DNA of 64,000 bases from NCBI GenBank assembly GCA_020536535.1, contig JAHLWZ010000804.1, forward strand, positions 1-64,000, written 5' to 3'. This DNA comes from Pelomyxa schiedti. Taxonomy: Eukaryota; Protista; Evosea. This document shows, in pieces, positions 28,943-51,755 of the stretch. The first letter of the stretch is position 1. Each line of letters opens with the position of its first letter. The position numbers and the translations under genes are program-made. Under the pieces are notes generated by a model, which searched no databases, was not told the origin of the DNA, and saw only the letters and a program-made list of their open reading frames with translations.

Positions 28943-29801
28943 ATGGGGAATGTGTACTGTCTGGACGACGATCTGGACCCCTCACTAACAACCGTAAATA
29001 CCACTCAACAAACGCTGTGCACAGAAGGCAACTGCAAGACATGTAGTGTTCCTCGATTAGCAGCTTACGAGGTGATTCCGCGGCACAAGGCACTGCATAA
29101 TGTGGGCACTTTTTCTTCTACATACACTGTGATGGCGATCCGTTGTCAATAACAGCCGATTGTGAAAATCGTGCCTTGTAACACTCACTACAGGTATTTA
29201 CGAATTTTGTGCTGGATGACCTTTGCCATTTGGAGCAGGACACGAGAACCCAGGCAGTTTTGTGCCGCAAAATGTGGAAAGAGTGCCACCGTGTGGGCCG
29301 GGGGATTGCAGATAAATCATCATTCACAGAAGCGCTCTCCTGCACTCCACCAGTAAAACGCCTTGAAATGCACAACTTCGAGGCTATGGGCAGGAATGTT
29401 CTGTGCAAGATAGGACTTGAATATTCACATAAACGCTCTGAGCTGTGTGCAGAAATGATCTTTCTCTGTGTTCAGGTTTTCCTCTCGCGGACTTTTATCT
29501 TCTGGGAAGAAGGCTCCTCTCTTGACCCGAAGGTGTTCCCGTCAGTATGTGCCCCCCCCTTTTTTTTTTGGACTCACCACAACTTCACCAGCAAAGTTTG
29601 AATGAAACACAGGTGTTTGTTGTTGATTTTTATGTTCTTCCTGGACTGCACGAGCTTTCCAATGACCAAAGAACAACCCCAGTGGCTTTTGTAAAGTACG
29701 TGCCAGAAAATAAATTAGTGAGTGGTGTTTATGATCGTGTCTGGAAACCACAGCCTTTTGAACTGGGAAAACTTGCTCGAGTCCATGGAAATGGTCTCTA
29801 A
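28943..29801 (+). CDS. Cluster partner protein 1: MGNVYC start plus the shared MIEAP/GrpE-like C-terminal domain; two introns
   Basis: Spliced ..YEVIPRHKALHN|VFTNFVLDDL..QAVLCRKMW..LCAEMIFLCVQVF..DPKVFPS|QSLNETQVFVVDFYVLPGL..VAFVKY. It is clearly paralogous to the genes at 38058, 39235, 35794, 49016 and 50324. Confidence 0.7.
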
Positions 29802-29844
29802 ACTGTAAATTTGCAAAGGATGTGATCCAAAGAAAGAAAATTTT

Positions 29845-32193
29845 TCAGAAGAGCTGGGAGGACAGTGCAGACGAGATTTGGGTGAAAGCATTCAACAGTT
29901 CAGCTCCTGACTTCCCAAATGAAATGTACCCACCAGCAGCAGCAGTCAGCGATTCGAGTTGTACAGTGTCAACATCTTGGCCAAAACCAACCACAAAAGT
30001 TTTCAGTCCACAGTCTTTGTAGTGTGCCTGTAGCAGCTTCATTTCAGCAACACCATTGCCGCACAGCCCATCAGACATGAACAACAAAATGGGTGTCCTC
30101 CCAGCAAACTTATTGTCTCCCCGGGCATCTGCTAGCACTTTGTCACATAGCTCCAAACCAGCTGCAAAATTAGTAGAATGACCGGCATCAGGCTCAAGTG
30201 GGTGATTCAACAAAGTAGATAGAGAACATGTGGGGCTTCTTATTCTAGCTGATGCACTATAGGTCACTATACAAGCACTATCCCCATTCGGGCACTTTAT
30301 GAGTCGGCATTTTGTAAATGCCAGAACTGCTTCTTTGAGTTCTGCCCATTTTTCCCCATACATTGATCCAGATTCATCCAGACAGAACACAATGTGATAC
30401 AGGGGTTCTGGAGGTGCACAGCTGTAAATATTCTCAGTCCACGAGGCAGAGGAGCCAGCAGTTTTGGCCTCAACAGAAATTAATGTGGATCCGAATTGTA
30501 AAGTAACATCAACTGCCCTTCGCTCAACTCTGGATCCAAGGTTAGGGATATTCTTTACCTCCAATCCCCCTTTCACCAAAAAGAGGCCAGGTTCGTCTGG
30601 GTAGAGTATCTCTCGCTTCTTAGACTTGAAGACAGAAAACACCACACTTTCTTGGTTTGGAGTCAAAGGATAAAAAGTTAGGTGGGTAGAGTGCCCAACA
30701 TCAAGGGTATCCCTGCACTTCACGAAAGTTTTCAACACATGACACCGCTTCTCACCTTGCTCAGTTAAAAAGACAAGCCTTCCTGGGTGCTTGCACGCAA
30801 GGTCCGACGTTAGTATGCTGTAGGTGTAAGGAACACATCTCTGGCTTATAGACATGGGGTGTATTCCAAATTCCACAGCACCTTCCGCCACAGCGGAAAT
30901 TGGCCTGTTAGGCCATTTGACAACCAATGGAGAAAGAAAGTCATTGATAACTTGACGATAGATGGGAGAAGCAGCAAATCCGCCAACCAAAAACACTTTG
31001 GGTGAAACAGAACCAGGCAAAACCTCTTTAATACGCTGCCGAATATGCCAACTTGCAATTTCGGCTTGCTTGGAAATAAAATTGGTGAAAACTGCGGGAG
31101 GTAATCGCAGTTCATTGTGTGGACTAAGGTTCACAGGGAGCACTGGATGTTCCAAGTTATACTTCTTGACAAGAACAGGAATTGCTGGCTTGTCAAGTAA
31201 AGCAAGGGTATTCCCAATAGCAGTAAGCTGCAAATTTTGAGTCTCCGCACTACACTTCATCTCCTCAATTTCATCTTCCAACCGAAACCATTCCACATCT
31301 TGCTTTGCTCTTGAAAATACATCCCCACCTTCATCAAAAATGCGGCCCAGAAATGATATTGCAGCGGCGTTTACTTTCGTGGAGCCCCATGGACCGCCTG
31401 TTGGGGGACAAAGCTCACAAAGCTCAGTGGGGGAAGTACACTTGTGCATTGTAATATCGACAGTACCTCCTCCAGCATCAACCATTAAGTATATCGCACC
31501 TGGTGTTAGATCAATTTGGAAAGCCTTCTTTACTGCCAGGGAGGCTGCCTCTGCCTCCAGTACAATCATTACATCAGAAAGCTTAGCCCTCAAACATACA
31601 TCTCGCATAAATAGCCGAGCAGCTTGGTCCCATATGGCAGGGACAGTGACTACCCATTGAACATCACTCTCAGAAAGCCGAGTGAAACCAAGTGTGTTCT
31701 CCATATCCCTCATAGCTTTAGCCTTCACATGTTCAATCACTTTTTGAATAACTACGTCGAGACTCATAGTACGGGCAGGGTACTCAGTGTCAGATACAAT
31801 ATTGTTTCTAGATGACTCCCCTTCCAGATGCATTTTGAAATTTCGGAAATGGTACATGTGGATGCGCTCTGCCGCATCCATGTTTCGCACCCTGTCGCGA
31901 GCCAAATAGCCGAAGGCATCAACCGTGTATTCGATTGTGCCTCCAACGTTCCTTTCCAAAATGAGTACTTCAGTCAGCGTCTTGAAGTTCGTTGTGCCCT
32001 GCCACCGGGACAATTCTGTTGGTGCTTTTCCAGCCATGTCACGGTACGCGAAACCGGTGCCAGAGGTTCCAAAATCAATGGCGCAACTCACTAGCTTGGA
32101 TTCGACGCGCATTGACCCGCTAAGAGCGCGTAGGTTCGGGGTGCTGCACGTCGGTGCAGTTGTAGAGGCAGTAGGAGCTCTTAGTCTCCACAT
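29845..32193 (-). CDS. HSPA12-like atypical Hsp70 fused to a C-terminal vWA domain (copy 1), intronless
   Basis: AIDFGTSGTGFAY; WVVTVPAIWDQ; VLEAEAAS; VDAGGGTVDIT; VFLVGGFAAS; AVAEGAVEFG. vWA part: IVFCLDESGSM..STNFAAGL..ILLFMSDG..TFVVGFG. First ATG is at 32193. Confidence 0.9.
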   Translation of the reverse strand: MWRLRAPTASTTAPTCSTPNLRALSGSMRVESKLVSCAIDFGTSGTGFAYRDMAGKAPTELSRWQGTTNFKTLTEVLILERNVGGTIEYTVDAFGYLARDRVRNMDAAERIHMYHFRNFKMHLEGESSRNNIVSDTEYPARTMSLDVVIQKVIEHVKAKAMRDMENTLGFTRLSESDVQWVVTVPAIWDQAARLFMRDVCLRAKLSDVMIVLEAEAASLAVKKAFQIDLTPGAIYLMVDAGGGTVDITMHKCTSPTELCELCPPTGGPWGSTKVNAAAISFLGRIFDEGGDVFSRAKQDVEWFRLEDEIEEMKCSAETQNLQLTAIGNTLALLDKPAIPVLVKKYNLEHPVLPVNLSPHNELRLPPAVFTNFISKQAEIASWHIRQRIKEVLPGSVSPKVFLVGGFAASPIYRQVINDFLSPLVVKWPNRPISAVAEGAVEFGIHPMSISQRCVPYTYSILTSDLACKHPGRLVFLTEQGEKRCHVLKTFVKCRDTLDVGHSTHLTFYPLTPNQESVVFSVFKSKKREILYPDEPGLFLVKGGLEVKNIPNLGSRVERRAVDVTLQFGSTLISVEAKTAGSSASWTENIYSCAPPEPLYHIVFCLDESGSMYGEKWAELKEAVLAFTKCRLIKCPNGDSACIVTYSASARIRSPTCSLSTLLNHPLEPDAGHSTNFAAGLELCDKVLADARGDNKFAGRTPILLFMSDGLCGNGVAEMKLLQAHYKDCGLKTFVVGFGQDVDTVQLESLTAAAGGYISFGKSGAELLNAFTQISSALSSQLF

Positions 32194-32312
32194 ATCCAAT
32201 AAGACCCCACGCAGTCCAAGACAACTTACTTTGGCTAGGTCGCTTCGCTCTGACAGCAAAGTCTTCTTGCAAAAAAAAAAAATCTTCCACCCCTACTTTT
32301 TCAGAAAATTTG

Positions 32313-34022
32313 ATGGGTCTGCAAGAAAGCACATGCCCACCAAATTTCGTCTGTTGCGCCATAGATTTCGGAACGTCGTACACGGGGTTCGCCTTCCGTG
32401 ATAGGCGTAAGGGCCCTCACTCGCGCGCCGTGATGTCGGATTGGGCCTCGTGCCAATTGCCCAAGACGCCCACCGAGGTTGTTCTGGACGTCGCTCCTCC
32501 CCATGCACTCATCAAGTTTGGGCACGACGCCAGAGTGTATATGAGAAATCTCGACGACGAGGTGTCGATGAAGTGTCTGCATTTCAAGGGCCCGAAGATG
32601 TTGTTGTACGAGCGTTCCAACAGATCGGAGGTTTTCAGCACGAACCAGCCGAGGGTGTCAGTTACTCTGAAGCACCTTGTCACATGCATACTTGGGCATT
32701 TGGTGGAGAAGGCACTGGCTCAGATGAACAGGGACTTCCCCACCAGAATCGAGGAAGTCAAGTGGGTTCTCACTGTTCCCGCAATATGGGACCAGTGTTC
32801 GAGGGCTTTCATGGAGGAATGCGCAACTCGGGCAGGCATTAACAACGTCATACTGGCTTTGGAGCCAGAGGCGGCTTCGGTGGCAATGAAGGACAAACTG
32901 CGCTTTTCTGTTGGAACTAAGTACATACTTGTTGATGCGGGAGGTGGTACTGTTGACATCACAGTTCATGAGACCATCAGTGACACCACTATTGTTGAAC
33001 TGCTTCGTCCATCTGGTGGCCCATGGGGATCAACCAATGTCAATTCTCATTTCTTTAAGCTCATGGAGGATGTTTTTGGGGATGATGTGATTGCCATGGC
33101 AAAGGAAGACGCTTCTGTGTTTGATCTAGAGGATGCTATTGAATCAATGAAGCTTAATCTCTGTGAAGAAGTACCAAAGATCAACATTTCAATGTATTGC
33201 ATTGCTAGGTGCCTGAAGCAGATGTCAAAGCCACCAATTCCTCAAATGATCAACAACTTCAACACATCCCATCCCACAATGGTTAATGCCAAGGGCGAGC
33301 CTCTCCTGTCCCCCCTTCAAGATCACGGAATAAGAATCGACGCATCGTTGATGAAATCCAAGATCAAGCAGCTTGCAACAGAAACGAGCAATCACATCAA
33401 GGACAATCTGTTGCCATCTCTCTCTGGAGTAACTGATGTATACCTAGTTGGTGGCCTGGCAAAGTGTCCGTATTACTACGACACCATGGTTACCTTGCTC
33501 CCGGGTCAATTGAGTGTTCATTTACCAAATGATCCCTTGGTTGCTGTTTTGGAAGGAGCAGTGATTGCTGGGGAGAAAGCTCAGTGCGTGAAAAAAAGAT
33601 GCGTGCCGTACACCTATGCAGTAAGCACAACAGATCTGGCTCCCCGGCACCCTGGAAGGCCCACATTCCTAGTTGACGGGCAGAGGCGCTGCCATGTACT
33701 TCAAACCTTAGTTAGAAGTGGAGATTTAGTTGACACTGAGAGTGAAGTTTCTCTTGCCTTCTCCCCTATCAACCCCGATCAAGACCGCATCACATTCGAT
33801 ATCTTCAAGTCCAAAAAAACAAATGTGGAATACCCTGACGACCCAGGAGTGGAATTGGTCAAAGCAGGACTGCAAGTGAATAACCTCCCCGGCGTTGGCC
33901 TCCCTGTTCAGCAACGCCCACGTGTTACACTGAAGTTCAAGTTTGCCTCCACTATCATTACTGCGCAAGCTGTGTGTCCTGGCTTTCCACCTGTCGTGGC
34001 CAAGTGGAATGAGGGCTTGTAA
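32313..34022 (+). CDS. HSPA12-like atypical Hsp70 (copy A1), intronless
   Basis: AIDFGTSYTGFAF; WVLTVPAIWDQ; LALEPEAAS; VDAGGGTVDITVH; GGPWGS; VYLVGGLA; VAVLEGAV. No EEVD or KDEL tail. Confidence 0.9.
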   Translation: MGLQESTCPPNFVCCAIDFGTSYTGFAFRDRRKGPHSRAVMSDWASCQLPKTPTEVVLDVAPPHALIKFGHDARVYMRNLDDEVSMKCLHFKGPKMLLYERSNRSEVFSTNQPRVSVTLKHLVTCILGHLVEKALAQMNRDFPTRIEEVKWVLTVPAIWDQCSRAFMEECATRAGINNVILALEPEAASVAMKDKLRFSVGTKYILVDAGGGTVDITVHETISDTTIVELLRPSGGPWGSTNVNSHFFKLMEDVFGDDVIAMAKEDASVFDLEDAIESMKLNLCEEVPKINISMYCIARCLKQMSKPPIPQMINNFNTSHPTMVNAKGEPLLSPLQDHGIRIDASLMKSKIKQLATETSNHIKDNLLPSLSGVTDVYLVGGLAKCPYYYDTMVTLLPGQLSVHLPNDPLVAVLEGAVIAGEKAQCVKKRCVPYTYAVSTTDLAPRHPGRPTFLVDGQRRCHVLQTLVRSGDLVDTESEVSLAFSPINPDQDRITFDIFKSKKTNVEYPDDPGVELVKAGLQVNNLPGVGLPVQQRPRVTLKFKFASTIITAQAVCPGFPPVVAKWNEGL

Positions 34023-34150
34023 TATAAAATACTCAATAAAAAGCCGGCGAATAAGGAGAGGCAAAGTGTGTCCCTTTGATAGGGTACACAGTTGTTCCTC
34101 TTTGTCTTCACCAACTTGAAGCTTTCGGCTTTACGTTAAAACCAACTGAA

Positions 34151-35761
34151 ATGCGGATCTCTGTACCAGCACCCACACTCACCAAAAGAGAACCACACGC
34201 ACATCCATCACGTCATCATACGGCGCACGTTGCGGCGACAAGTACAAAGTCATCATCTGCAGCGCCGACTGGGACATTAACCTTAACGCCACACAGGACC
34301 GCTAACCCTGGCCCACAAGCCACAGCGCATGCAGTTGGTCTCCGTCCCACAGCGGAGGTGACGTTCCAGCAGCCCAAACCACCGCCGACGAACTGGTTGT
34401 GCTGCTGCGCGATTGAATTTGGGTTGATATCCGCCGGCTTCGCATTTCGTGACAAACGCAAGGGGAACCCACGCGTGGTGATGGCCGAATGGAACACGCA
34501 GCTTCAGTTTCCGACTACTCCGATCGAGGCGGTAATGGACGCTGCGCCGCCCCACGCGCTCCTCAAGTTTGGTCAGGAGGCGAGAACTTTCATGCAAAAC
34601 GCAGATTCGAAGGTTTCCGGCAATGCTCTGTACTTCAAGGATCTCGGCCACCTTTGCGATGGGAAGACTGAAGTTTTCAGCACGAATCAGCCGCGCGTGT
34701 CTGTTCCTCTGAAGCACTTGGTGACGTGCATTCTCAGCCACTTGGCTCAAAAGGCTCTAGCTCAGATGAGAAGGGATTTTCCGACCGAGATGGACGACGT
34801 GAAGTGGATCATAACTACCCCTGCAATTTGGAATCAGAGTGTCAGAGATTTCATGCAAGAATGCTCATTAAAAGCTGGCATTGTGGGCGGAGTTATCATT
34901 TCTGATTCAGAGGCCGCCTCCGTTGCAGTTAAAACTCATTTTAACATTCCTATTGGAGGCATGTATATGGTGGCAGACTTAAGAGGACCTACTGCTAGCA
35001 TCACAGTTCATAAGTGCCTGGGTGATTCCGTAATTGCCGATATTTACGCTCCCTCTGTCGGCCCTTGGGGAGCAACCTTGATAAATAACTATTTCTTTCA
35101 GCTTATGACAGATATATTTGGAGATGATGTGCTGGCCAAGGCGAAAGAAGACCCTGGTATGTCTGACTTAGAGGAGGAAATCGAGGTCGCTAAGCTCACC
35201 CTCTCCGATTCTGTCCCAAAGGTCAACATCCCAATGGACTGTATTGTTAGCACCCTTCTACAGATGGCAAAGCCACCATTTACGCAAGTAGTCAATAACT
35301 TCAGCGCATCCAATCCCAAAATGGTCGATTCTACTGGTGCTCCTCTTATTTGTACATTTAAACACAAATTAAGAATAGACACATCACTGATCAAATCCAA
35401 GATTGAGGCACTTGCAGCAGAAATGAGTAATCACATCGACGCCAAATTGTTGCCCTCTCTACCAGGGGTCAAAGTTGTTTATCTTGTTGGTGGTAGTGAA
35501 TGTGAGCGGTATCGGATAGCCATGGCCATCAAGCTTGCTGGAAAACTGGAGATTGTGTCTCAATTGCCTCTGACACTTGTTTTAGAAGGAGCAGTACTTC
35601 ACGGGGAGAGGTCATGGTCTGTGAAAAAAGAATACCCAACCCCACACATAACAACTATCCCTGAACGTATTCCAATGCACACTGTGTCAATATGTACTAG
35701 GCATGTACTGAAAGAAGGACCGAGCCCAGAAAAAGACCGCCCTAAAGTAGCAATACGTTAA
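34151..35761 (+). CDS. Degenerate HSPA12-like Hsp70 (predicted pseudo-ATPase, C-terminally truncated), intronless
   Basis: Alignable with the neighbouring Hsp70s (VFSTNQPRVSVPLKHLVTCIL, PAIW, YLVGG, VLEGAV). Phosphate-1 is AIEFGLISAG and phosphate-2 is ADLRGPTASIT. Confidence 0.85.
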   Translation: MRISVPAPTLTKREPHAHPSRHHTAHVAATSTKSSSAAPTGTLTLTPHRTANPGPQATAHAVGLRPTAEVTFQQPKPPPTNWLCCCAIEFGLISAGFAFRDKRKGNPRVVMAEWNTQLQFPTTPIEAVMDAAPPHALLKFGQEARTFMQNADSKVSGNALYFKDLGHLCDGKTEVFSTNQPRVSVPLKHLVTCILSHLAQKALAQMRRDFPTEMDDVKWIITTPAIWNQSVRDFMQECSLKAGIVGGVIISDSEAASVAVKTHFNIPIGGMYMVADLRGPTASITVHKCLGDSVIADIYAPSVGPWGATLINNYFFQLMTDIFGDDVLAKAKEDPGMSDLEEEIEVAKLTLSDSVPKVNIPMDCIVSTLLQMAKPPFTQVVNNFSASNPKMVDSTGAPLICTFKHKLRIDTSLIKSKIEALAAEMSNHIDAKLLPSLPGVKVVYLVGGSECERYRIAMAIKLAGKLEIVSQLPLTLVLEGAVLHGERSWSVKKEYPTPHITTIPERIPMHTVSICTRHVLKEGPSPEKDRPKVAIR

Positions 35762-35793: not shown

Positions 35794-37990
35794 ATGGAGG
35801 AGCTCACACAAATTCTGGCCAGGGAGAAGCTAGAAAAAGACAAAATGGAGCATGCATTTGATGACTTGAAGAAAGACCATGAGAAGATAAAGATTGAGCT
35901 GGCCCGTTTGAAGGCACAACATAATGATCAGTCACTAAGTAAGTCTTCCTTCAGGTGGAAAAATTCCACTTTCTGTTTTGCTTATTTTTTCAAGATCTTC
36001 CCCTGTTCACTAATGCGTCGTTGTTTGTGCTGTCTTCTCCTCATTTGGAACGAAGTATGGAAAGCGCTATCTTTTCGGCTCTTCCAACTCCTTGTGGGCC
36101 CCATCAGATCGACTTGTACAAATTAGTCAGCACACAGAAGGAATACACTGGAAAAATATCAGTGACTCAGCCAGAGTACATATATAGGGAAGTTCTTACC
36201 ACCAACCTGTACCGTGCACTGGGGGTCAAAGCAGCAAAAGCCACGTTGTCACGTTTTAATATTGCCAGCCCTATTTCACGGGACGTCTCAGAACCTAGGT
36301 TTGCCAGTATGACCAAGAAAGTGACACCATTTTATGCGCTTGGCACAGAGTTTGTGCAGAAATTAATGCTACAAAACACAAGGACCACGCCTGTCACCAT
36401 CACTGCACCATACAGGGGTTACTTGCAACTGCCACAGCTTACTGTGGAGGGTCTATGGAAGCTAGCTGCTGTGGCAAAATGGTTCGGTGATACAAACTTT
36501 CTTGGCTGTTCCGGAGACTCTGCAGGATTCAAAGTAATCATGAGAAATCAAAGAACCGGTGATATAGAATCAGTGGCGAGCATCAAGAAAATATTCTCTA
36601 ATTCGAGTGGCGGGGAAATCACGCCCCAAAGCCACCCAACTAAAGGATTTCAGATGAAGGACATCACCTTTGGCTCCGACAACCAGTACATACCCTTCCG
36701 GAGTCTCTGTTCCCTGGAGAGAGATGAATTCCTCAGTACAGTTCGTGAAATTATTCAGATGTCTGAAGGTGATATCACTTCACTGGTACTGACCAAGGCA
36801 TGTCTAATACCTGTGACAACAGCCAATACTCCTGGTGAGATCATCGCCGTGAAAGAAGTTGTGGATCGATCCGTAATAGCATCTCTCATTTCCAGGCAGC
36901 AGGAACTAAGAGAGATATACCATGACGAACTGTTCAAGGATCAAATACTAGTCACAAGATCTATTATTCCAAATCTAGCATCCCCAAATCCACCTCCCCA
37001 AAAGACAAGCGCTAATACAAGAGTGAGGCCCCTCCCTCCCATCCCTCTCCCACCTGTGTCTCTTTTCACACTGAAGCCTGAGACTTCACATGAAACGTCA
37101 GTTACCGACAGTAAGCGCACGCAGCCCGAAACCCCTGCCATAAACAATACATCACCATCCAGCACAAGCAAGAGAAACGATGACGAAAAAAGCTCTCGGC
37201 AATCAGTGGTTCTCAGCTTTTCAATGTCACCTGCCCCCAAATTTTCTCAAATAGAACTCGGACATTCACCAATTTGGCCGCAACCGGCTTCTCAATTTTC
37301 ATTATCTGGATATCGACCCCAGATTGCAGCTCCTTGTCAAGATAACTCTCTTGGAGTGATGCTTCAACCTTATGTGTCTTTGGCAAGTGCCAAGAAACTA
37401 GACGTAGATTCTCTTCCACCTGCCCCATTCCCACTACCAGTTGAAATGTGGCGCCATCAGTCGTATGACGACATCGCCCTCCTGTGGGAAAACCTCCGTA
37501 ATGTAAGTGTCACTTCAAAATTGTCACTAATTATCTTGTACAGGACATGATAAACGTTGCACTGGATGTTCTCCCATCCATGGGACTTTGCAGTCCTACT
37601 GAGAAAGCTCAATTCGTGAAGCGCATTTGGGACTTTTTCCACAACAAAACCGTGACTCTGTTAGAGCAACAGCAAAAGGGGCAATCTCCAGAAGGGGATA
37701 TCGTCCAAGCATCAGTTGTCTCTTTCACGAGCCAATTGCGTGGACTCAACACCCAGGACACCAGCGTAATGGGTGACTTGTGTGAACTCATTTTGAACCT
37801 CTGCTTTTGCACTGTGGGGCGGGATGGCTTCTGGCTCACATACCCACAAGTTGGTGACACATACAACTCACAAGAAATGGAGCCATTTCTTTTTGACCAA
37901 GGAACTGCTGGTACAGTCGCACTCTGTGTGATCCCTGAGGTTCATTGTGCCCCAAGAGGCAGTGTGCCTGCCCTTGTTCTCCTCGAGTAA
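35794..37990 (+). CDS. Cluster partner protein 2: coiled coil + degenerate PI4K/HipA-like kinase-fold region + Pro/Ser-rich linker + shared C-terminal domain; two introns
   Basis: Coiled-coil N-terminal exon; YREVLTTNLYRALGVKAA and WFGDTNFLGCSGDSAGF; spliced LRN|DMINVALDVL..KAQFVKRIW..YNSQEMEPF..VALCVIPEV. Confidence 0.7.
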
Positions 37991-38057: not shown

Positions 38058-39195
38058 ATGGGTCACAGGTGCAGCACAGCATTCGCCGTAGAACCAGAAA
38101 ACAGCAGAGTTCAACCGGCACAAAAACACGGCGATCCTTCCACTTTGCAGGTTGCATCAGCCGCACCCCAGTCTGCACAAACCGACTGTCCCCGCGCCCC
38201 CACTGATCGTCACCGCCACTACCACTACCACGATCGCGACCACGACCACGGCCACCACCGCCATCGGCACGGGCACGGGCACGAACACGGGTCCAAGGAG
38301 CGAGTTGGAGCAGAGGACCGACACGGCAACAGCCGCAAGCATCAAGGCCATAACCAACATCGCCGTGGCCATCGGAAAGAACCAACATGTCTGTCTTCTC
38401 GCTGCTCCTATTCTAGTCGTAGCGTTCGTGTCCCTGTCCACAAGCACATCAAAAAACCCTTGCCGCGGCAGCATCGGCGGAGAACGCGAGGCCTCTGGTA
38501 TCACGTCACTCCGGTGGCGCCGCACGAGGTGGACCTCAGACACAGTGCGCTGATAAATGTGTGCGCCTTTGTGCCGCCCACAATCCCCGTACTGCTCACA
38601 ATTTACCCCAAAAACCATGCAGATATTTGTTAACTTCGTGGTGGATGACCTCGACGACATGGAGAAGGACTGCAGGAAGCAAGCACACTTTTGCCGGAAA
38701 ATGTGGAATCTGTGTACCTCTGTTGGACTCGACACTGCCAGACATTCCACCAGTAATCAACCGTACACATCATCCACAGCTACAAGCACAAGCACAAGCG
38801 ACAAACACAAGGAACAAGAGGAGCCGCTTGGACAAGAGCAGCTCGAGACACTCAGTCACCGTGTTCTGTCAGATTTGCATCTGCCAATCACGAAGCAGAG
38901 GACCCAGCTCTGTGCTGCTATGATCTCCCTTTGTGTTCAGGTATATATCTCAACAGATATGTTCTCGTTCTGGGAGCCATCTGAAGGCACTGTGCTACCG
39001 GCAGTGGCTCCTTTTGATGTAGAGGTGTTTCCTTCTGTATGTCTAAACATATGTTCTTTGCTGTGCACTAACATTTCAAAGCAAAGCTGGGATGAAACTC
39101 GAAGGTTGGGTGTCGATTTTCATGTAATTCCTGGGCTGTGCTTCCAGGGCAACAACAGAAAAACTAAACCCATTGTATTTGTCAAGTATTTGTAA
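38058..39195 (+). CDS. Cluster partner protein 3: MGHRC start, His-rich insert, shared C-terminal domain; two introns
   Basis: DRHRHYHYHDRDHDHGHHRHRHGHGHEHG; spliced HEVDLRHSALIN|IFVNFVVDDL..QAHFCRKMW..LCAAMISLCVQV..VEVFPS|QSWDETRRLGVDFHVIPGL..IVFVKYL. Confidence 0.75.
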
Positions 39196-42200: not shown

Positions 42201-44552
42201 TTTCAATGAACTTATTTCTCTAAAAGAGGAAAGTGCTTTCTGAGTATGTACAATGCTCTTTTCAAGCTCAGTTACTGATGTGGAAAAAATTATATACTCT
42301 ATGTCGATTTGTCTGGGAATGTCTTAGGTTCCAACTTATGTTACCGAACTTAGAAACCTTTTCAGTTGAGAATTAGCTGCATCACTGTAGGAATTTTCCA
42401 GATTTTCCATGTACTGCCAGCTCTTCAGAATCTCAGGGATAGGTGACGGCGAGCAATTAAACTGCCCGAGCATTTCAAAAATTTTCTCAAGTTTCTCTTT
42501 ATCTCCTTTCTGTTGATTCTTTTCGTTATAGTACTGCTTCATGTAACTAGCAGCAATAACACAAGAGAGTATACTGTCAAATTTTGGAACCTCTGCAAAT
42601 TTCGCTATCTGCTGCATCATCCATTGCATAATCTAAGGGAGATAAGTTCCATTTTTGAAGGCACCCACCAACATTGTTGGCCCTTATGTGCCACTCCTCA
42701 TTAAGTGATCTGAGATTTTGAAAAATTGCAGTGTGCTTTGTTGTAATATTCTCTTCCAACGTGGCCACTGTGATTCGGAGGTTTTCATTTTCAGTCCTTC
42801 CTGTGGCCAGTCGTAGTTTTGTGGATTTAACTGCAAGCTCCCGTAGTGCTGTGAGCCTTTGTAATTTTGGGTTCCAAATGCACTTTAATTCGTGTAGCCA
42901 TAGAAGAGGCTCTGCCATCTCTCTAATAGGCTCAGAGAATTTCCCACTCAATGAAAGATAGGTTCGAACCCCAGCCGATTCTTTTTCAAATTGCAGCTCT
43001 GTGCGGTAAATATCCAGCAAATCTCCCAAGGTTTTTCCCACTTCCGCAAACTGGGATCGCACATTCTCACATGGGGCATGGAAGTTATTCAACTTGGCAC
43101 GCGCCTCTTGAATTTCACTGCCTCTAGTTATGTAGTCGGACTCCTGTGTGCATTCGGGAAAGGGAGCTTCCCACTCTAAGGTTTTTTTCTTTGCCCAAAT
43201 ATAGAGGAGAGTGGTTTCAATGACTAGCTGTAGTTTTTTTTTGCCTTTCTTAATGTCTGCATAAGTTTGCTTCAGCTTCTCACAGATAATCTGGGTAAGT
43301 AAGATGAAACTTTAATATTAGGAAATATCGACCTTGCTACTAGAAGTAGCGTACTTGGAAGCTAATCCACTCATCTGTTGGGAAATAGTACCATTGTATT
43401 CATCTTTGTATTTTCGAGAGAGATCATACTTGAGAAAGTTAATTCGGAGCCTTCTCTTTTAAATACCTGGTCTTGTGCTTCAGTCAAACAGGTAAAAGTG
43501 AGAGAAAGTGAGAGGGTCTTCCTACACCAGTCCCGTATCAGGCTCAACTCGAGGCTTTGTGAAAAATCGGACTCACTAAATTAGATATGAAAATTTCAGT
43601 GTTCAAGAATTTGGGCCACCTCTGTATTTCATTGTAGAACTGTTCGTAGTCATGTTTGACTTGTTTTTCCAGTTCCAGCCAATACTGCTCGATATCGGGG
43701 ATGTCCAGCATGGAAGATGACTGGTCACTTCTACAGTCCAACTGCTCGAGACATTTTTTAAGGTACAGCGAGTCAGATTTCTTTGTGTCTTCATCACAAA
43801 CAAACTGCATATATTTTGCTTCCAGAGATTGTGTGCTGGGAGCAACATCCTGACTCCTTTGAAAGAGGGTCTTATTTGCCATTGTCCACGTCACCACCTT
43901 TAATACAGAAATACAAGATGTGATGAAATATATGAGGAGCAATCAACAAGGGCGGAAAATTCGTGCCTTGCGTAAAAGTGTTGTTATTATCTCCTTCAGA
44001 TGTTCAATGACAAACTTGTTCAAGATCGAGAGCGAAACAGCTGCAAGAGTATCAGATGGACAATCACCAAAACTTTGCTGTATTTCATGCAATTTCCCGT
44101 CAAGAGTGCACAACCCCTGAACCATTTGATGTGCCTCTGGAAGGCCACACATATGAAATACTTCTTTTATGTCTTCCACATAGGGGGCTTCTGTGAAGCT
44201 CAGAATTTTGTCTTTTGCTTGGGTGAATGTAGCTGTATATTTGACAACTTCCTCGTCGCAATATTTGGATATCCTCTGTGTTGCACTTTGCCACACTAAT
44301 TTCCAGGAATCAAGGGACTGGGATTCCTTCTCCTTCTTGTTTTTTTTTTCGTTTGTTTGTTGGTTTGTTTACAGAAACAAGAATGATGCTCTGTTTACCA
44401 CAACGGCAATGTGATCGCGCAAACGACAAATCTTTGTTAAGTCAACCAAAGGATCAGGCTAGAGAACCACCTACCATCTCTTCTGCATCGCACAAAGAAT
44501 TGATAGGTCCACCAAACGCGGGGGTGTCGTTTCGCTCCCCTACGGTTGCCAT
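39235..44552 (-). CDS. Cluster partner protein 4: long spectrin-repeat-like helical rod + coiled coil + shared C-terminal domain; many introns
   Basis: Helical repeats with periodic Trp (LTQAQDQVFKRE, EVTEWFNKL, FQEFTEWWKSM, EAERIRSWCA). A plausible splice GSE|AVKSSFND joins the ORF at 39314-40510, which lacks its own ATG. The end reads VFTNFVLDTL..QAELCKEMW..EFDGSIMQIFPQYA|PASESGTVLMCVLPGFANQKAVVFL. Confidence 0.65.
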
Positions 44553-44636
44553 TTCACAGGGTCAAGTTGGTTTTTCTTTTCACTTAAGTTGTTGTCCCTT
44601 TTCGCTTAACTCAGAACGAGAACAAAGGTTTTACTA

Positions 44637-47024
44637 CTACACAGAGTTAAAAAACTGGGAACACAGTGAGGAAGAGATGTGAGTGAAGGCATGCAACAGC
44701 TCAGTGCCGTTTCGGCCAAAGGAAATGTATCCACCAACAGCAGCAGCAAGGGATTCCAGCTGAGCGGTGTCCACATCAGTTCCAAAGCCAACCACAAACG
44801 TCTTCAGGCCGCAGTCTTTGTAGTGTGAGTGAATGAGCTTCATTTCAGCCAGGCCGTTCTTGCAAAGCCCATCAGACATTAAAATCAGAATTGGTGTCCT
44901 GCCGCCAAAGTTATTGGTCCCCCTGGCTTGCATCAGAGCGGTGTCACATAGTTTCAAACCCGCCGCGAAACTTGTTCCCCCACCAGAACGGGAGTGGAGT
45001 GGGTGCCTTTGCAAACTGGAAAGAGGGCCGTTTGGCCTTCTTATTCTAGCCGTGCTGCTATAGGTAACTATACAGGCAGTATCACCGCAATTTCCATCAG
45101 GAAATTTTTCGAGCCGGCGTGTTACAAATGCGTTTACTGCCTCCTTGAGTTCCTCCCATTTGGTTCCTTTCATAGAACCAGATTCATCCAGACAGAATGC
45201 AATGTGGTAAAGCGGCTGTGAAAGTGGATTACTATAAATACTTTCACTCCAGGAGGCGGAAGAGCCAGTAGCTTCGGCTTCAACATGAATTAGAGTAGCT
45301 CCAAATTTTAAGGTAACATTGATTGCCCTTTCCTCGACTCTGGCACCAACATTAGGAATATTTCTCACCTCCAATCCTCCTTTCACCAGAAAAACGTCAG
45401 GATCATTTGGGTAAAGTATGTCTTTCTTCTTAGACTTGAAGACAGAAAACAACACAGTCTCTTGAGTTGGAGTGAGGGGATAAAAGGTTGCACTGGTTGG
45501 TTCTTCAATTTCTAGATTATCCCTGTATCGAACAAAAGTTTTCAACACATGGCATCGTTTCTGTCCTTGCTCAGTCAAAAAGGTTAGCTGTCCTGGATGC
45601 TTGGATGCAAGTTCCGATGTGAGAACCGCATAAGTGTAAGGAACGCACCTCTGCGTGATAGACATTGGCTGTATGCCAAATTCCACGGCACCTTCTAAAA
45701 CTGCAGAAATTGGGTTGTTTGGCCACTTGACTACATGATCAGGGAGGGCTTTCTGGATAAAATTGCGATAAATTGAGCTTGCGGCAAATCCTCCAACCAT
45801 GAATACTTTGGGGAGAACTTTGGTTTCAAGAGGAATCTCGTTAATAAGGTGCTGAACATGGTTGCTTGTTATTTGTGCTTGCTTGGTAATGAGATCGTTG
45901 AAAACAGAAGGGGGTAGTCGTAGTTTCATATTCTGTAGATTTTTAACCTGTTGCTCAGGATGTGACAAATTCCACTTGTCTATAAGAGCCGAAAATGTTG
46001 GTTTATTAAGTTTGACTAACGCGTTCTTTATACAGAGAACACCCAAGTTTTGGATGTATCCTACTTCAGCAGATATTTTTTTGGTCTCAATATCATCTTC
46101 CAATACAAGCCAATCCGCATCTTGTTTTGCTTGTTCAATTACATCCCCCCGTTCATCAAAAATACTGCCTATGAAAGAGATGACGTCACTATTGACCTTG
46201 GTGGAACCCCACATTCCGCCTGAAGGAGGGTAAAGCTCGCGAAGTTCAGTAGGAGACAGGTACTGATGTACTGTAATATCAACGGTTCCTCCACCCGCAT
46301 CCACCATCAAGTATACCGTACCTGGGGTTAACTCTGATTGTAGGTCCTTTCTTATAGCAAGAGATGCAGCTTCTGGCTCCAGGGCAATCATTACATCTGA
46401 AAGATGAGCCTGCAAACATGTATCTCGCATCATAAGTCTGGCAGCTTGATCCCAGATGGCAGGGACAGTTACTACCCACTGAACACTCGTCTCGGAAAGA
46501 TTGGGGAAGAAACGAGACATTTGTGTCATGGCCTGGTCTCTGACGAATTCAACCACCTTCTGAATCACACGCTCCAAACTCATAGTCCGGTGTGGGAACT
46601 CTGCATCAGATAGCTGTTTATTGCGGTCTCCTTCTCCTTCAAGTTGCATTTTGAACTGGCGGAAATGATAGATACCTCGGCGCTCTTCGTCATCCATATT
46701 TTTCACCATATTGCGCGCCTCAATTCCAAAGGCAATAACCACGGGTCCTGTAGGAGTTTCCTTGATAATAACCTCAGTGAGGGTTTTGGGGCTCGATGTA
46801 TACTGCCATATCGACAGCACGGCCGACGGTAGTACAACACCGGCTATGTCCCGAAAAGCAAAACCGGTACCCGAAGTGCCAAAGTCAATGGCGCAGCACA
46901 CTAGTTTGGTTTCTACACGCATAGAACCGTGCATGCTAGCTGAGCTTTTGATCTTGACGGATGGTGTTGAAACGGGAGCAGAGACGGTCGGAACCGATTT
47001 AGTTGGAAAGCTGCGGTGATACAT
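44637..47024 (-). CDS. HSPA12-like atypical Hsp70 fused to a C-terminal vWA domain (copy 2), intronless
   Basis: AIDFGTSGTGFAF; VTVPAIWDQ; IALEPEAAS; VDAGGGTVDIT; VFMVGGFAAS. vWA part: IAFCLDESGSM..GTSFAAGL..ILILMSDG. Paralogous along its full length to 29845-32193. Confidence 0.92.
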   Translation of the reverse strand: MYHRSFPTKSVPTVSAPVSTPSVKIKSSASMHGSMRVETKLVCCAIDFGTSGTGFAFRDIAGVVLPSAVLSIWQYTSSPKTLTEVIIKETPTGPVVIAFGIEARNMVKNMDDEERRGIYHFRQFKMQLEGEGDRNKQLSDAEFPHRTMSLERVIQKVVEFVRDQAMTQMSRFFPNLSETSVQWVVTVPAIWDQAARLMMRDTCLQAHLSDVMIALEPEAASLAIRKDLQSELTPGTVYLMVDAGGGTVDITVHQYLSPTELRELYPPSGGMWGSTKVNSDVISFIGSIFDERGDVIEQAKQDADWLVLEDDIETKKISAEVGYIQNLGVLCIKNALVKLNKPTFSALIDKWNLSHPEQQVKNLQNMKLRLPPSVFNDLITKQAQITSNHVQHLINEIPLETKVLPKVFMVGGFAASSIYRNFIQKALPDHVVKWPNNPISAVLEGAVEFGIQPMSITQRCVPYTYAVLTSELASKHPGQLTFLTEQGQKRCHVLKTFVRYRDNLEIEEPTSATFYPLTPTQETVLFSVFKSKKKDILYPNDPDVFLVKGGLEVRNIPNVGARVEERAINVTLKFGATLIHVEAEATGSSASWSESIYSNPLSQPLYHIAFCLDESGSMKGTKWEELKEAVNAFVTRRLEKFPDGNCGDTACIVTYSSTARIRRPNGPLSSLQRHPLHSRSGGGTSFAAGLKLCDTALMQARGTNNFGGRTPILILMSDGLCKNGLAEMKLIHSHYKDCGLKTFVVGFGTDVDTAQLESLAAAVGGYISFGRNGTELLHAFTHISSSLCSQFFNSV

Positions 47025-47177
47025 GGTCGGCTAATACTTTTTTCGGGCTGGTGCTTGCCACTATGGTTGGTTTTTTACAGGTTTTGAACACCGGTTTTTT
47101 TTTTCTTTCGGTGTGTAGCTTGGTGGCGGGAACAAAGTTGGTTTGTTCTGCACACAGTAAACTAAATTTGGACAGTG

Positions 47178-48950
47178 ATGGCAGGCGTGACCATCCAACC
47201 GCAGGCCACTGCGCCCTCGCCCTCGGTGGCAACTGCCTCTACCACAAAAACCAAGGTGTGCTGCGCGATAGATTTCGGCACCTCGTTCACCGGGTTTGCG
47301 TTTCGTGACAAGCGCAAGATCGGCAACCAACGCATTGTGATGGCCGAATGGAACTCACAACTGCTGCACCCGAAGACGCCGACCGAAGTTGTTCTCGCCG
47401 CGGCGCCGCCTCACGAGCTTGTCGAATTCGGACACGAGGCCAGGACCTACATGCGAAACCTCGACGCGGCGGTGGCTCGAACCGTTTTGCACTTCAAGGG
47501 GTTCAAGATGCTTCTTTACGGGAATGACAAGAAGACTGAGGTTTTCAGCACGAATCAGCCGCGTGTGTCGGTTTCTCTGAAGCACTTGGTGACGTGCATT
47601 CTCAGCCACTTGGCTCTAAAGGCTCTGGCTCAGATGAGAAGGGATTTTCCGACCGAGATGGACGACGTGAAGTGGGTCATAACTGTCCCCGCAATTTGGG
47701 ATCAGAGTGCAAGAGCTTTCATGCAAGAATGCGCCACTGGAGCAGGGATGAAGCAGGTGGTCCTTGCTTTGGAACCAGAGGCCGCTTCTCTTGCCGTGAA
47801 GGCCAACCTGAATTTTCCCATCGGCACCAAATACATCCTCGTTGACGCGGGTGGTGGCACCATCGACATCACGGTGCACGAGTGTATAAGTACAACTCAG
47901 ATTGCGGAGCTTCACCGTCCAACTGGTGGCCCATGGGGATCGTCCTTTATAAACGAGTATTTCTTTCAGCTCATGGGCGAGGTATTTGGAGAGGACGTGG
48001 TGACCAAGGCGCAAGAAGACCCCGGTATATTTGACTTGGAGGACGAAGTCGAAGGAATGAAGCTCACTCTTTCTGATTCCATCCCAAGACATAACATTTC
48101 AGTTTATTGCATCGTCAGCCTCCTTTCACAGATGTCAAAGCCACCTTTTTCTCAAGTAGTCAACGACTTCAATAAATCTCATCCCAAACTGGTTGATGTT
48201 AATGGCACTGCTTCTATTCTCACCCTTCAGAATCATAAACTCAGAATTGATGCCGCCCTGATTAAAGCCAAGATCGAGAAGCTTGCTGCAGCAACAAGCA
48301 ATCACATCCAAGCCAACTTGCTGCCATCTCTGTCTGGAGTCAAGGTTGCTTACCTTGTTGGCGGTCTGAGTAGGTGCGAGTATTACCGCCAAGTTATGAA
48401 GACACAGCTCACTGGCAAATTGGAAGTTGAGTCACCAACTGATCCTTCCGTTGCTGTATTAGAGGGGGCAGTGCTCTTCGGGGAGTCAGTGATTGGGGAC
48501 TCAGTTGGGAGTGTCAAAAAACGATGCATGCCACATACCTATGCAGTTAGTACCACAGACCTCGCACCACGACACCCTGGAAGGCCCACATTCCAAGTCG
48601 ATGGGCAGAGGCGGTGCGAAGTACTCCAAGTCCTAGTCAGAAGCGGCGAGTCACTTGACAGTGACAGCGAGATAGGTCTGGAGTTTTCACCCATTAGCTC
48701 TGACCAGGACAGCATCACATTTGATATTTTCAAATCCGCAAAGCCCAATGTGATGTACCCTGATGAGAAAGGTGTGGAACTGGTCAGGGCTGGACTTCAA
48801 GTAAACAACCTCCCTGGTGTTGGTCTACCTGTTAAGCAGCGCCCACATATTACTTTGAAGCTAAAGTTTGCCTCCACCATTATTACCGTTCAGGCTCTCT
48901 GTCCCGGTTTCCCCCCCATTGAGGCCAAGTGGAAAGAAACTCTGGAATAA
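47178..48950 (+). CDS. HSPA12-like atypical Hsp70 (copy A2), intronless
   Basis: AIDFGTSFTGFAF; WVITVPAIWDQ; LALEPEAAS; VDAGGGTIDITVH; AYLVGGLS; VAVLEGAV. Paralogous to 32313-34022. Confidence 0.92.
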   Translation: MAGVTIQPQATAPSPSVATASTTKTKVCCAIDFGTSFTGFAFRDKRKIGNQRIVMAEWNSQLLHPKTPTEVVLAAAPPHELVEFGHEARTYMRNLDAAVARTVLHFKGFKMLLYGNDKKTEVFSTNQPRVSVSLKHLVTCILSHLALKALAQMRRDFPTEMDDVKWVITVPAIWDQSARAFMQECATGAGMKQVVLALEPEAASLAVKANLNFPIGTKYILVDAGGGTIDITVHECISTTQIAELHRPTGGPWGSSFINEYFFQLMGEVFGEDVVTKAQEDPGIFDLEDEVEGMKLTLSDSIPRHNISVYCIVSLLSQMSKPPFSQVVNDFNKSHPKLVDVNGTASILTLQNHKLRIDAALIKAKIEKLAAATSNHIQANLLPSLSGVKVAYLVGGLSRCEYYRQVMKTQLTGKLEVESPTDPSVAVLEGAVLFGESVIGDSVGSVKKRCMPHTYAVSTTDLAPRHPGRPTFQVDGQRRCEVLQVLVRSGESLDSDSEIGLEFSPISSDQDSITFDIFKSAKPNVMYPDEKGVELVRAGLQVNNLPGVGLPVKQRPHITLKLKFASTIITVQALCPGFPPIEAKWKETLE

Positions 48951-49015
48951 AAACAACTTTGTACTTATGACCTTGTCATTGATGTCTTTCTGTGAAAGGA
49001 ATAAAAAAAACAGAA

Positions 49016-50280
49016 ATGCAAGGTCCGGGGTTGCAAGAGGTACTGGCCAACCAGAACAAAATTATTGCCAAATTGGATTCCATACTTCATGTACTGTGGG
49101 GCATGTGGGAACGCAAAAGACAAAAGGCGGAACACAAGAAGCATGTCATAGACGAAGAGAAATCTTTCGATTCCCTGTTGGCTGGTGTCTTCGACCAAGT
49201 AACTTTCCTTCAATCCACGATGAATCAGCCACCATTGGAGAGGCCTCCCAATTCTCCACTGAGTTTAGGCGGGCACCAGCAACTTGTGGTGACTCCCATT
49301 TCACCCCTACGTAATGTGGCTACATCTGCTAGTAGATATTCAAGTGCTTGCCTTGACTCCCATCTTCCGCCAATGCACCCCTCACTTCCAGATGCCGCCA
49401 TCAAAAACGAGAAAGGCCGGAATGAAGTCTCTACTAGTGGTGCCATACAGCAAGCTTCTTTGAATGGTACACAGTGCCAAGTCCAACAACAACCCAGTCA
49501 GGCACAAACCAACAAAGCTATTCCAAACTCACAAGTACCTTCGCCATTACCTCTACCCAAATCTAGTCAGACGAGTCAAATTTCAACAGCAAACCAATGT
49601 CAAGTGCCACGTTCACCAAATGTTACTCCAAAACAGAGAAATGAAGATAATACTGCAAATTCCAACAAACCTGTTCTCGATTATTCCCAAAGGCAGCCTT
49701 CTACACAATTTTCATTGCAACTTCAGGAATTGCGCAATCAGGCGCAGCATAATGTAATGGCTCAGGGGAAAAAGCTTCAAAATGTAAGTGACTCCAAACA
49801 TGGAGAAATTAACTCTTCGTTAACAAGGTAATGACGAACGTAGTATTGGACATTTGTCCCGCCATTGAGCAGACTGACCCTTGTCAGCAAGCCCAGTTCG
49901 TGAAGAGCATTTGGGACTTCCTTTACAATGGTGCTGCGAATATTGTGGACCAACACAGAAAGGGACAGTGCCCTGGAGGTGATGTAGTTCGAATCTGGGT
50001 TAACTCTGTCACGAGCAAACTGCGAGGACTTAGCATCAAGCAACAGGTCATGGTAACTGAAATGTGTGAACTCATTTTCAACCTCTGTCTGTCCACTGTG
50101 GAGCGACCTGGATATAGCTTCACATGCTCCCTCCCTGATGTCATTTACAACCCAAAGGAAATGGAGCTCTTTCCTTCCCAGGAGGTACCCACATCCCCCG
50201 GAAAAGTTATGCTCTGTGTGATTCCCGGACTGCAGTACTACGGTCATACCCTTCTTTCACCCTTTGTTTTAGTAAAGTGA
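49016..50280 (+). CDS. Cluster partner protein 5: N-terminal helical domain, Q/S/P-rich disordered linker, shared C-terminal domain; one intron
   Basis: LQEVLANQNKIIAKLDSILHVLWGMWERKRQKAE; spliced KLQN|VMTNVVLDIC..QAQFVKSIW..IYNPKEMELFP..VMLCVIPGL..SPFVLV. Confidence 0.75.
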
Positions 50281-50323
50281 ACTTAACGGAACAAACATTA
50301 ATTTGTGTAAAGGCAATTTTTTT

Positions 50324-51755
50324 ATGTCGGGTGAGACTGACAATAACATTCAGTTGGTGGTGCAAACCCAGTACACCATTATGGAGTCTCTGCAGCAAGT
50401 CCTCAGACTGGTTGTTGGGGTACTCGCCATTAAGAAACGCAAGGTCGAGCGGCGCATCGCAGCCGCCGGGCAGCTGGACGACATCGCGGCCCTCGTTCTC
50501 GCCGCCGAGACGCAAGTTACCAAACTCCAGGACAACATTCAGCTGCTCTCCTCCAGCCCCAGGGCTGCGGCAACAACAATTCCTCAGGGGTGCCCGGCAG
50601 ATGATTTGATACAACGCCAAAAGAGGCGGCAGCAGCAACAGCAACAGCAACAACGAGAGCAGACGGGCGTCGAAGCCACGCCCTCACATATGATGCAGGC
50701 ACCGCAAGTCACACCGACAGGGACTGGTTTCACGCCCCAGAAAGGGGTGCAGGCTGCTGCATCGACGTGTTCGTCGCCCCCGGTGGACCCTTCTAGGGTT
50801 TCACCAGGTCGCGGACTGCGAAATTCCGAGGCGTACCCGCAGTACCAGGCTCAATACCAATATCAGAACCATACTACAAGTCCGAATGCATACCCGAACC
50901 AGAATCAAAACCAGAACCAGAACTTGATCCACCACCATCACCGCCGGAAGATTGCCGAAGATTCCTCCGGCCAGGAGATGAGCGTTGATGGGAATACCCA
51001 GAAGGATGTGGATTGTGTTGGTATTAGTAACAACACCAAGTCCCAACCTCCGCCCGAAAGAGTTGACCAGCTGCCTCCCCAAAATGGCCCAAGGGCAAAC
51101 CAACAGCCGGGTATACAACACCAAAATCCTGTGCGACCGTTGGCAAATAGTCCACAGCCTCCACTTAGTGCACGAATCCAAAAGAACGCTGTATCTCCAG
51201 CACAAAATCGGCCTGTCAGGGGAATTCCTTACCAACCTCATGAGATAACGACCTTGCTAAAATCTTTCCAAAATGTACACACAGGAGGTTCTTTTCTTTT
51301 CTAACCTTTCAAAACAGAACCTCACAAATCTGCTTGCAGATGCTCTTCCTTTTTCAAGTATCACCGAGCCAATGGCTCAAGCTAAACTCTTCTTCAAAAT
51401 TTGGAAATACTTCAGTGATGCGGCTTCCCATACCCCAGTTATGTCTGAGGAACAATTTGACAAAAAGGTTTCAGCAGCACTCTGCCTCTTCGTGGGCCTC
51501 AGGGAAAAGGACTACAATCACGCCAAATCCATTTGTGAAGCAATGCTGCGCATTCATCTTGCGTTCACCCAAACCTCTGGCTATACATTATGGGCACCAC
51601 AAACAGGAACCACACACTTCAACACACAGAAAATGGAGGCACTCCCTGTACATTCCAATCCAACACCACAGGATTATGTAGCTGCTTGCGCGATCCCTGC
51701 GGTATTTTATAACCGTAACCTCGTGTTTAAGGCACAAGTGGCCCTGAACAACTGA
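50324..51755 (+). CDS. Cluster partner protein 6: N-terminal helical domain, Q/N/H-rich linker, shared C-terminal domain; one intron
   Basis: IQLVVQTQYTIMESLQQVLRLVVGVLAIKKRKVE; polyQ and QYQAQYQYQN..NQNQNQNQN..HHHH; spliced SFQN|NLTNLLADAL..QAKLFFKIW..HFNTQKMEAL..VAACAIPAV..FKAQVAL. Confidence 0.75.

Follow-up and report, generated by a model that had tools for sequence, protein, structure and literature searches.

HSPA12A and HSPA12B are relatives of Hsp70 which lack the canonical substrate-binding domain and whose partners are poorly known, while the mode of action of Mieap (SPATA18) is still debated. Gene neighbourhoods are seldom conserved in eukaryotes. ATPases combined with a protein-binding von Willebrand factor A (vWA) domain of the metal ion-dependent adhesion site (MIDAS) type are known from the vWA-MoxR systems. 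Here we describe a cluster of 11 genes in the amoeba Pelomyxa schiedti, located at positions 28943–51755 of a 64,000-nucleotide stretch of DNA (hereafter the window; the first 64 kb of contig JAHLWZ010000804.1, which is 134 kb long, in the 52-Mb assembly GCA_020536535.1) and packed between a MobB-like gene and a gene for a Rab GDP-dissociation inhibitor. Five of the genes encode HSPA12-type Hsp70s and six encode partner proteins which share one common C-terminal domain. On balance, we lean towards reading this region as a lineage-specific expansion of a two-family module of HSPA12-MIEAP type. The HSPA12 and vWA families are known, and the shared domain probably belongs to a known family as well, MIEAP; the pairing of the families, the fusion of Hsp70 to vWA and the design of the cluster appear to be undescribed, and full-text literature searches found no paper linking HSPA12 with Mieap/SPATA18, nor with vWA, PF16026 or GIL1.

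The Pelomyxa Hsp70s resemble HSPA12A and HSPA12B in having an actin-like ATPase core, intact phosphate-binding motifs and no EEVD tail, and their genes are intron-poor and tandemly duplicated, as in the HSPA12 expansions of oysters. However, they are only 27–32% identical to HSPA12A/B and form a clade of their own with two subtypes, in which three copies carry a C-terminal vWA domain and one copy lacks the ATP-binding motifs. The Pelomyxa fusions differ from the vWA-MoxR systems in that the ATPase has the Hsp70/actin fold rather than being AAA+, is fused to the vWA domain rather than encoded next to it, and is found in a eukaryotic setting. Mieap consists of a hydrophilic N-terminal half, made of coiled coils and intrinsically disordered regions, and a structured hydrophobic C-terminal half, which together drive the formation of biomolecular condensates (PMC10845071). 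The Pelomyxa partners share this two-part plan, with far more varied N-terminal parts, and, like Mieap/SPATA18 (PF16026) and plant GIL1/IRKI (PF24994), they end in a compact structured domain; they also lie next to HSPA12 genes, as do the MIEAP genes of molluscs and amphioxus. They differ from Mieap in the length of this domain (approximately 145 amino acids, or approximately 190 in the copies on contig C22, versus 195 positions in the PF16026 model) and in having lipidation-type, His-rich and Gln/Asn-rich N-terminal parts, which have not been described for Mieap. A role for cardiolipin seems doubtful in Pelomyxa, because this organism has only reduced mitochondrion-related organelles.

The 11 genes of the cluster are as follows, with the evidence for each given last.

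28943–29801, + strand: g1, small partner (239 amino acids in model P0126), with the shared domain at 29185–29702 and two short introns; own-genome profile 6.4e-38, tblastn.
29845–32193, − strand: g2, HSPA12-like Hsp70 with a C-terminal vWA domain with MIDAS; PF00092/PF13519 ~1e-10, own-genome search 1.5e-109, alignment with g8.
32314–34022, + strand: g3, stand-alone HSPA12-like Hsp70 with intact ATP-binding motifs; PF00012 5e-09, 67% identity to g9.
34076–35761, + strand: g4, degenerate HSPA12-like copy; no Pfam match, alignment, branch length 0.67 versus 0.12 for g9.
35794–37990, + strand: g5, partner that starts with a short coiled coil, followed by an unassigned stretch of ~400 residues, a linker rich in Pro and Ser, and the shared domain (37547–37990); profile 2.1e-56.
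38058–39195 (start approximate), + strand: g6, partner with a His/Arg-rich disordered N-terminal part and the shared domain at 38614–39195; profile 4.6e-43.
39238–44552, − strand: g7, long helical rod partner (1539 amino acids in model P0125), with the shared domain at 39238–39766; profile 2.4e-40.
44637–47024, − strand: g8, HSPA12-like Hsp70 with a vWA domain with MIDAS; PF00092 6.2e-11, PF00012 1.4e-05.
47178–48950, + strand: g9, stand-alone HSPA12-like Hsp70 with intact motifs; PF00012 1.1e-07, HSPA12A/B-like best matches, RNA contigs at 47873–48940.
49016–50280, + strand: g10, partner with a Gln/Ser/Pro-rich N-terminal part and the shared domain at 49831–50280; profile 2.9e-59, spliced RNA contig.
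50324–51755, + strand: g11, partner with a Gln/Pro/Asn-rich (prion-like) N-terminal part and the shared domain at 51273–51755; profile 6.9e-48, RNA contig at 51322–51770.

A first-pass annotation of the window, made from the sequence alone, had described 11 tightly packed genes with gaps of approximately 30–150 bp, and we measured intergenic gaps of 33–153 bp. All eight open reading frames (ORFs) of at least 390 amino acids in the window lie inside the cluster, whose genes have long open frames and few, very short introns (42–44 nt where seen); the flanking genes are split into short exons. The HSPA12 genes of oyster and amphioxus are also compact, at approximately 2.4–3.4 kb for approximately 580–605 amino acids. 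The public gene models fuse neighbouring genes, P0121 spanning g3 to g6 and P0122 joining g10 to g11, but a conserved C-terminal ending directly precedes each stop codon, which argues for separate genes and for the total of 11 given in the first-pass annotation. Parts of g9 (47873–48940), g10 and g11 (51322–51770) are covered by RNA-library contigs. In g10 an RNA contig joins position 49783 to 49828 over a 44-nt GT..AG intron (49784–49827) and, because this spliced contig crosses the intron, the variable N-terminal part and the shared domain of g10 are encoded by a single mRNA.

Pfam, alignments and database matches agree with the earlier assignment of five genes to the HSPA12-type Hsp70s, as two vWA fusions, two stand-alone copies and one degenerate copy. 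PF00012 exceeds its cut-off in g3, g8 and g9, falls slightly below it in g2 (17.9 versus 20.6 bits) and gives no match in g4. Outside Pelomyxa the closest relatives of g9 belong to molluscs and other animals and are HSPA12A/B-like (27–32% identity), and those non-Pelomyxa proteins among its top 120 matches that carry a family name are HSPA12A/B-like or Hsp70; in the own-genome search g2, g3, g4 and g8 match g9 at 1e-109 to 1e-256. The nucleotide-binding motifs (phosphate-1 DxG, phosphate-2 DxGGGT and adenosine GG) are intact in g2, g3, g8 and g9 and are all altered in g4, in which DFGTS has become EFGLI, LEPEAAS has become SDSEAAS and DAGGGTVD has become DLRGPTAS. The g4 protein, which sits on a long branch, also lacks the last ~120 residues, corresponding to the C-terminal beta-rich part, yet its frame of 561 codons is open; the first-pass annotation was therefore right to call this copy degenerate. 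The vWA domains of g2 and g8 are matched by PF00092/PF13519 at ~1e-10 to 1e-11 and contain all the MIDAS residues (D-x-S-x-S, T and D, seen in the alignment as LDESGSM, then T, then MSDG). In both cases the vWA copy is arranged head-to-head with a stand-alone copy, g2 and g3 being approximately 120 bp apart and g8 and g9 approximately 153 bp.

The Hsp70 tree places the Pelomyxa copies in a clade of their own, divided into a vWA-type and a stand-alone-type subfamily. The Hsp70-vWA gene on contig C22 groups with two environmental Hsp70-vWA proteins (P0011 and P0012), the only sequences outside Pelomyxa in which we saw this fusion. No shared domain was found in the flanks, which are short, of the environmental Hsp70-vWA contigs (L041 and L042), and a database search with the vWA part alone returned two marginal vWA proteins only. 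A DNA contig of the source sample (run X3) which aligns to window positions 47646–47975 matches g9 only in short diverged stretches that are separated by other sequence; its most likely source is the paralogue on contig C941, which is 78% identical, and not a variant of the window locus.

The six partners have, as first described, unrelated N-termini and a common C-terminal domain, of which six copies of approximately 145 amino acids were found, with pairwise identities of 14–44% and invariant N, D, W, C and P positions. In all six genes of the window and in the copies on contigs C500 and C22 the domain forms the very end of the protein and is preceded by a coiled-coil or disordered region. 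The N-terminal part of g1 has 50 residues, starting with Met-Gly and with Cys residues close by; that of g6 is 15% His and 14% Arg, and that of g7 is a helical rod of 1385 residues. Of the labels initially given to these N-termini, His-rich (g6) and prion-like (g11) stand by composition, while two others found no support: the supposed kinase-like region, in g5, has no Pfam or PDB sequence match, and the supposed spectrin rod, g7 (P0125), is a helical protein of more than 1300 amino acids with neither a Pfam spectrin match nor a PDB sequence match. The g7 start lies 85 bp from the g8 stop (44552–44637) on the same strand, so that co-transcription or read-through of g8 and g7 is possible.

Whole-genome profile searches of the 52-Mb assembly found the shared domain only on contigs which also bear HSPA12-like genes. 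Contig C500 (26 kb) has four copies of the domain and five Hsp70-like genes, one of which is a vWA fusion. Two highly divergent copies (13–14% identity to the others), found with a local profile, are located on C22 just upstream of an Hsp70-vWA gene of a third kind, and the closer of the two is head-to-head with this gene at a distance of approximately 170 bp. Across the three loci the Hsp70s are 31–46% and the domains 13–35% identical, identities so low that these genes must be old paralogues and not assembly copies; the rod partners of the window (g7) and of C500 are homologous over more than 1000 amino acids, at 24% identity. The two families have thus stayed together through old duplications and rearrangements. 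Contigs C1856, C2809 and C2211 were rejected as independent pairings, since they are 83–98% identical to C22 or C500 (83%, 97–98% and 89%, respectively, over parts of these contigs) and represent haplotype copies or very recent duplicates. Near-copies of the partners show a ratio of non-synonymous to synonymous substitution rates (dN/dS) of 0.62–0.78, versus 0.24 for the N-terminus of the adjacent Hsp70 (the 83% pair was used). Both rod genes on C500 are immediately preceded by Hsp70-like ORFs of the same strand. One public model from that contig, P0124 (~1415–6645, − strand; 1485 amino acids), combines an HSPA12-like ATPase domain lacking the C-terminal beta part with a rod and the shared domain; it may be a natural fusion of both families, if the splice is real, or a false merge like P0121 and P0122.

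Outside Pelomyxa, four of ten look-ups found a bona fide PF16026 MIEAP gene as the immediate neighbour of an HSPA12 gene, far more than we would expect from a gene family of small size. In Lottia gigantea, Haliotis cracherodii and Potamilus streckersoni a gene encoding approximately 420 amino acids, with a coiled coil and PF16026, lies head-to-head with HSPA12 (spacer of 1.4–1.7 kb in Lottia and Potamilus), and in Branchiostoma lanceolatum a MIEAP gene of 632 amino acids sits just upstream of a tandem array of three HSPA12 genes. Pfam confirmed the animal MIEAP exons, with E-values down to 1.7e-18, and the neighbour genes give coiled-coil Pfam matches followed by MIEAP, the same layout as in the Pelomyxa partners. 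The HSPA12s of the three molluscs group together in a single, slowly evolving clade (support 100/100), apart from the HSPA12A/B clade and from the expanded bivalve clade and, as they are one orthologue clade, the pair predates the split between gastropods and bivalves. Both HSPA12 and Mieap/SPATA18 are among the cadmium-increased proteins in a zebra-mussel proteomics table, an anecdotal co-occurrence (PMC11036304). Two of the other six loci were looked at more closely and not accepted as MIEAP pairs, as the neighbours are not recognisably MIEAP. In the cichlid Astatotilapia calliptera (L048:4691–9132, − strand) a gene of 292 amino acids with no Pfam match on record lies head-to-head with an HSPA12A-like gene, and a short stretch of an ORF at 5496–5759 (− strand) recalls, by eye and with no profile score behind it, the first mollusc MIEAP exon. 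The other, an ENA metagenome contig of 38.7 kb (L050), is gene-dense and apparently intron-free, with HSPA12-like, UQ_con, Arf/Ras, DSPc, DEAD helicase and LAGLIDADG-like ORFs, and could come from a giant virus or from a eukaryote with a very compact genome; the small genes upstream of its HSPA12-like gene are unassigned.

Sequence comparisons place the shared domain in no family. Eighteen domain sequences scanned with Pfam at E up to 10 gave no relevant match, neither to GrpE (PF01025) nor to MIEAP; a PDB profile search returned chance-level rows only, a word-indexed search with an alignment of 13 sequences found nothing at E up to 10, no relative turned up when metagenomes were scanned with one of the C22 copies, and the Pelomyxa domain profile did not match the MIEAP exons in six-frame translations of the animal loci. 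In two AlphaFold models of the domain, with predicted confidence (pLDDT) of 76 and 84, four helices precede a small three-stranded sheet, and Foldseek found nothing in the PDB at E up to 0.001 with either model, which leaves the modelled domain without a clear solved structural relative. The named family to which it comes closest emerged from ESM Atlas feature searches with three copies of 13–25% mutual identity, in all three of which MIEAP was the best named family (scores 0.88, 0.92 and 0.93; 148–153, 172 and 180–185 shared features, the guide value for the same family being 170), with GIL1_IRKI_C lower in each list. In the shape search the better model (pLDDT 84) matched a GIL1_IRKI_C cluster over residues 52–155 with template-modelling (TM) scores of 0.47/0.51, and no MIEAP cluster. 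These are methods which give leads and not proofs. It is plausible that profiles fail to reach MIEAP because the partners evolve fast, as the dN/dS values indicate. We consider homology of the shared domain to MIEAP likely, and the best available reading is that it is probably a very divergent domain of MIEAP/GIL1-IRKI type. The MIEAP-like label of the first-pass annotation is therefore kept on the strength of the ESM Atlas searches and the GIL1_IRKI_C match at TM ~0.5, although Pfam, profile and pairwise comparisons show no significant similarity of this kind.

In the working that we propose, the partners would be self-associating scaffolds or adaptors, whose N-terminal parts would fix their place or material state through a lipid anchor (g1), a His-rich tail, a long rod or Gln/Asn-rich prion-like tails. 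The constant C-terminal domain would be the common handle by which the HSPA12-type ATPases recognise them, and these ATPases may spend ATP to assemble, remodel or dissolve the partners, with the vWA-bearing copies adding a second, MIDAS-dependent contact. A search of the window for heat-shock elements gave 0 matches versus approximately 1 expected, which we count in favour of this reading. A wider proposal, to which we give tentative credence and more doubt than trust, is that HSPA12-type Hsp70s and MIEAP-domain proteins make up an ancient dedicated two-component machine, older than the split between Amoebozoa and animals, kept as a head-to-head pair in molluscs and expanded in Pelomyxa, in which HSPA12 builds or dissolves MIEAP-type assemblies.

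Several results weigh against the HSPA12-MIEAP reading. No copy of the domain matches PF16026, and a six-frame search of the genome with this model was empty, with controls likewise silent. A profile of 11 copies retrieved only Pelomyxa's own six gene models from 1.84 billion representatives, an hhalign comparison with a shallow MIEAP alignment of four species (Lottia, Branchiostoma, Haliotis and Potamilus) was co-linear over 139 columns with P = 0.069, and pairwise Smith-Waterman scores between the domain and MIEAP were at shuffle level. No annotated MIEAP gene lies within 10 kb of HSPA12 in the other six of the ten look-ups (Mya, Crassostrea, Lytechinus, Glandiceps, the cichlid and the environmental contig). 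Human HSPA12A, HSPA12B and SPATA18 are on different chromosomes. No partner accompanies the Hsp70 paralogue on C941 within the 15 kb that were read, and the three Pelomyxa loci may all derive from one ancestral pair and hence not be independent events. A complex prediction for the g9 Hsp70 with the g10 domain gave 0.00 in two runs; we treat this as no answer and did not use it as evidence.

The mechanism originally proposed for the locus, in which the constant domain is a GrpE-like nucleotide-exchange factor releasing ADP from the HSPA12-type Hsp70s, now seems very unlikely. Like GrpE/Mge1, the domain would be an Hsp70 partner encoded near an Hsp70 gene, it is co-located with Hsp70s, and its gross layout, helices and then a small beta part, is alike; GrpE chains also appear low in the Foldseek list (9blt_B at E 3.5 and 8gb3_E at E 4.4, TM ~0.25), and one GrpE cluster appears in the ESM Atlas shape list, with TM 0.38/0.22. 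However, TM values of 0.22–0.38 are under the level of a shared fold, so that the domain does not fall within the GrpE fold, and the model shows no long dimeric helix pair. Pfam scans at E up to 10 found no match for the domain and, when the Pfam GrpE model was run against the genome, it matched at C1976, C570 and C187 (one above the cut-off after adding neighbouring pieces) and never at a domain copy. We also consider it quite unlikely that the clustering is incidental, a chance neighbour pair copied by tandem or segmental duplication with no functional link, the domain being a Pelomyxa orphan unrelated to MIEAP. One ancestral adjacency could explain all three Pelomyxa loci, the rod-type partner and its neighbouring Hsp70 have clearly been duplicated as blocks, and sequence methods link the domain to no family. 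Nevertheless, chance is a very improbable explanation, given how small the family is, for an independent adjacency of HSPA12 to true MIEAP in molluscs and amphioxus, and the family concerned is the one to which language-model searches had earlier pointed for the Pelomyxa domain; within Pelomyxa the linkage is kept down to 13% domain identity and in several orientations, including the ~170-bp pair on C22. Co-occurrence at three separate Pelomyxa loci, together with the adjacency in animals, thus bears out the earlier view that the clustering is not incidental.

An innate-immunity or conflict locus, which might for instance control the amoeba's prokaryotic endosymbionts or viruses, and in which the N-terminal parts would sense or localise and the degenerate Hsp70 would be a decoy or regulator, seems to us rather unlikely, and would in any case be a context for the HSPA12-MIEAP module and not an alternative to it. 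Consistent with such a role are the duplication and diversification of the genes, with one constant domain behind very different N-terminal parts, the fast evolution of the partners (dN/dS 0.62–0.78) and an apparently catalytically dead copy, g4, which has been kept open. An HSPA12 relative from a Logan contig (P0038, 804 amino acids) has an N-terminal DZIP3/hRUL138-like HEPN domain (PF18738, 1.9e-25), and DZIP3-type HEPN domains are treated as immunity-linked in animals, with immunity-type expansions in oyster (PMC3710099, PMC9646362). Pelomyxa schiedti is a host to prokaryotic endosymbionts (PMC10579272). However, Pfam scans found no known effector, sensor or death-type domain across the 11 genes, the mollusc HSPA12-MIEAP pair is slowly evolving and apparently a single orthologue, which is more like housekeeping than an arms race, and dN/dS below 1 fits relaxed constraint equally well. 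Overall, the first-pass annotation's observation of the cluster stands, and its interpretation is supported in part only, the linkage of the two families having held and the GrpE mechanism not.

The cluster is bounded by two genes that are not part of it.

28158–28895, − strand: MobB-like gene, left flank; PF03205, 9.5e-24.
52953–53291, − strand: exon of the Rab GDP-dissociation inhibitor gene, right flank; PF00996 GDI, 4.8e-34.

The MobB gene is a bacterial-type gene of molybdopterin-guanine dinucleotide synthesis, located in a eukaryotic contig beside intron-containing genes, and may have been laterally acquired by this anaerobe.

Since the two families are neighbours not only in Pelomyxa but also in three molluscs and in amphioxus, a testable hypothesis is that HSPA12 acts on MIEAP-type proteins. 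The natural variants present in Pelomyxa, which include vWA fusions, a dead ATPase and partners of the lipid-anchor, His-rich, rod and prion-like kinds, could help to dissect this system. If the two families do make up an ancient machine, human HSPA12A and HSPA12B would gain a class of partners, and Mieap condensates would gain a regulator.

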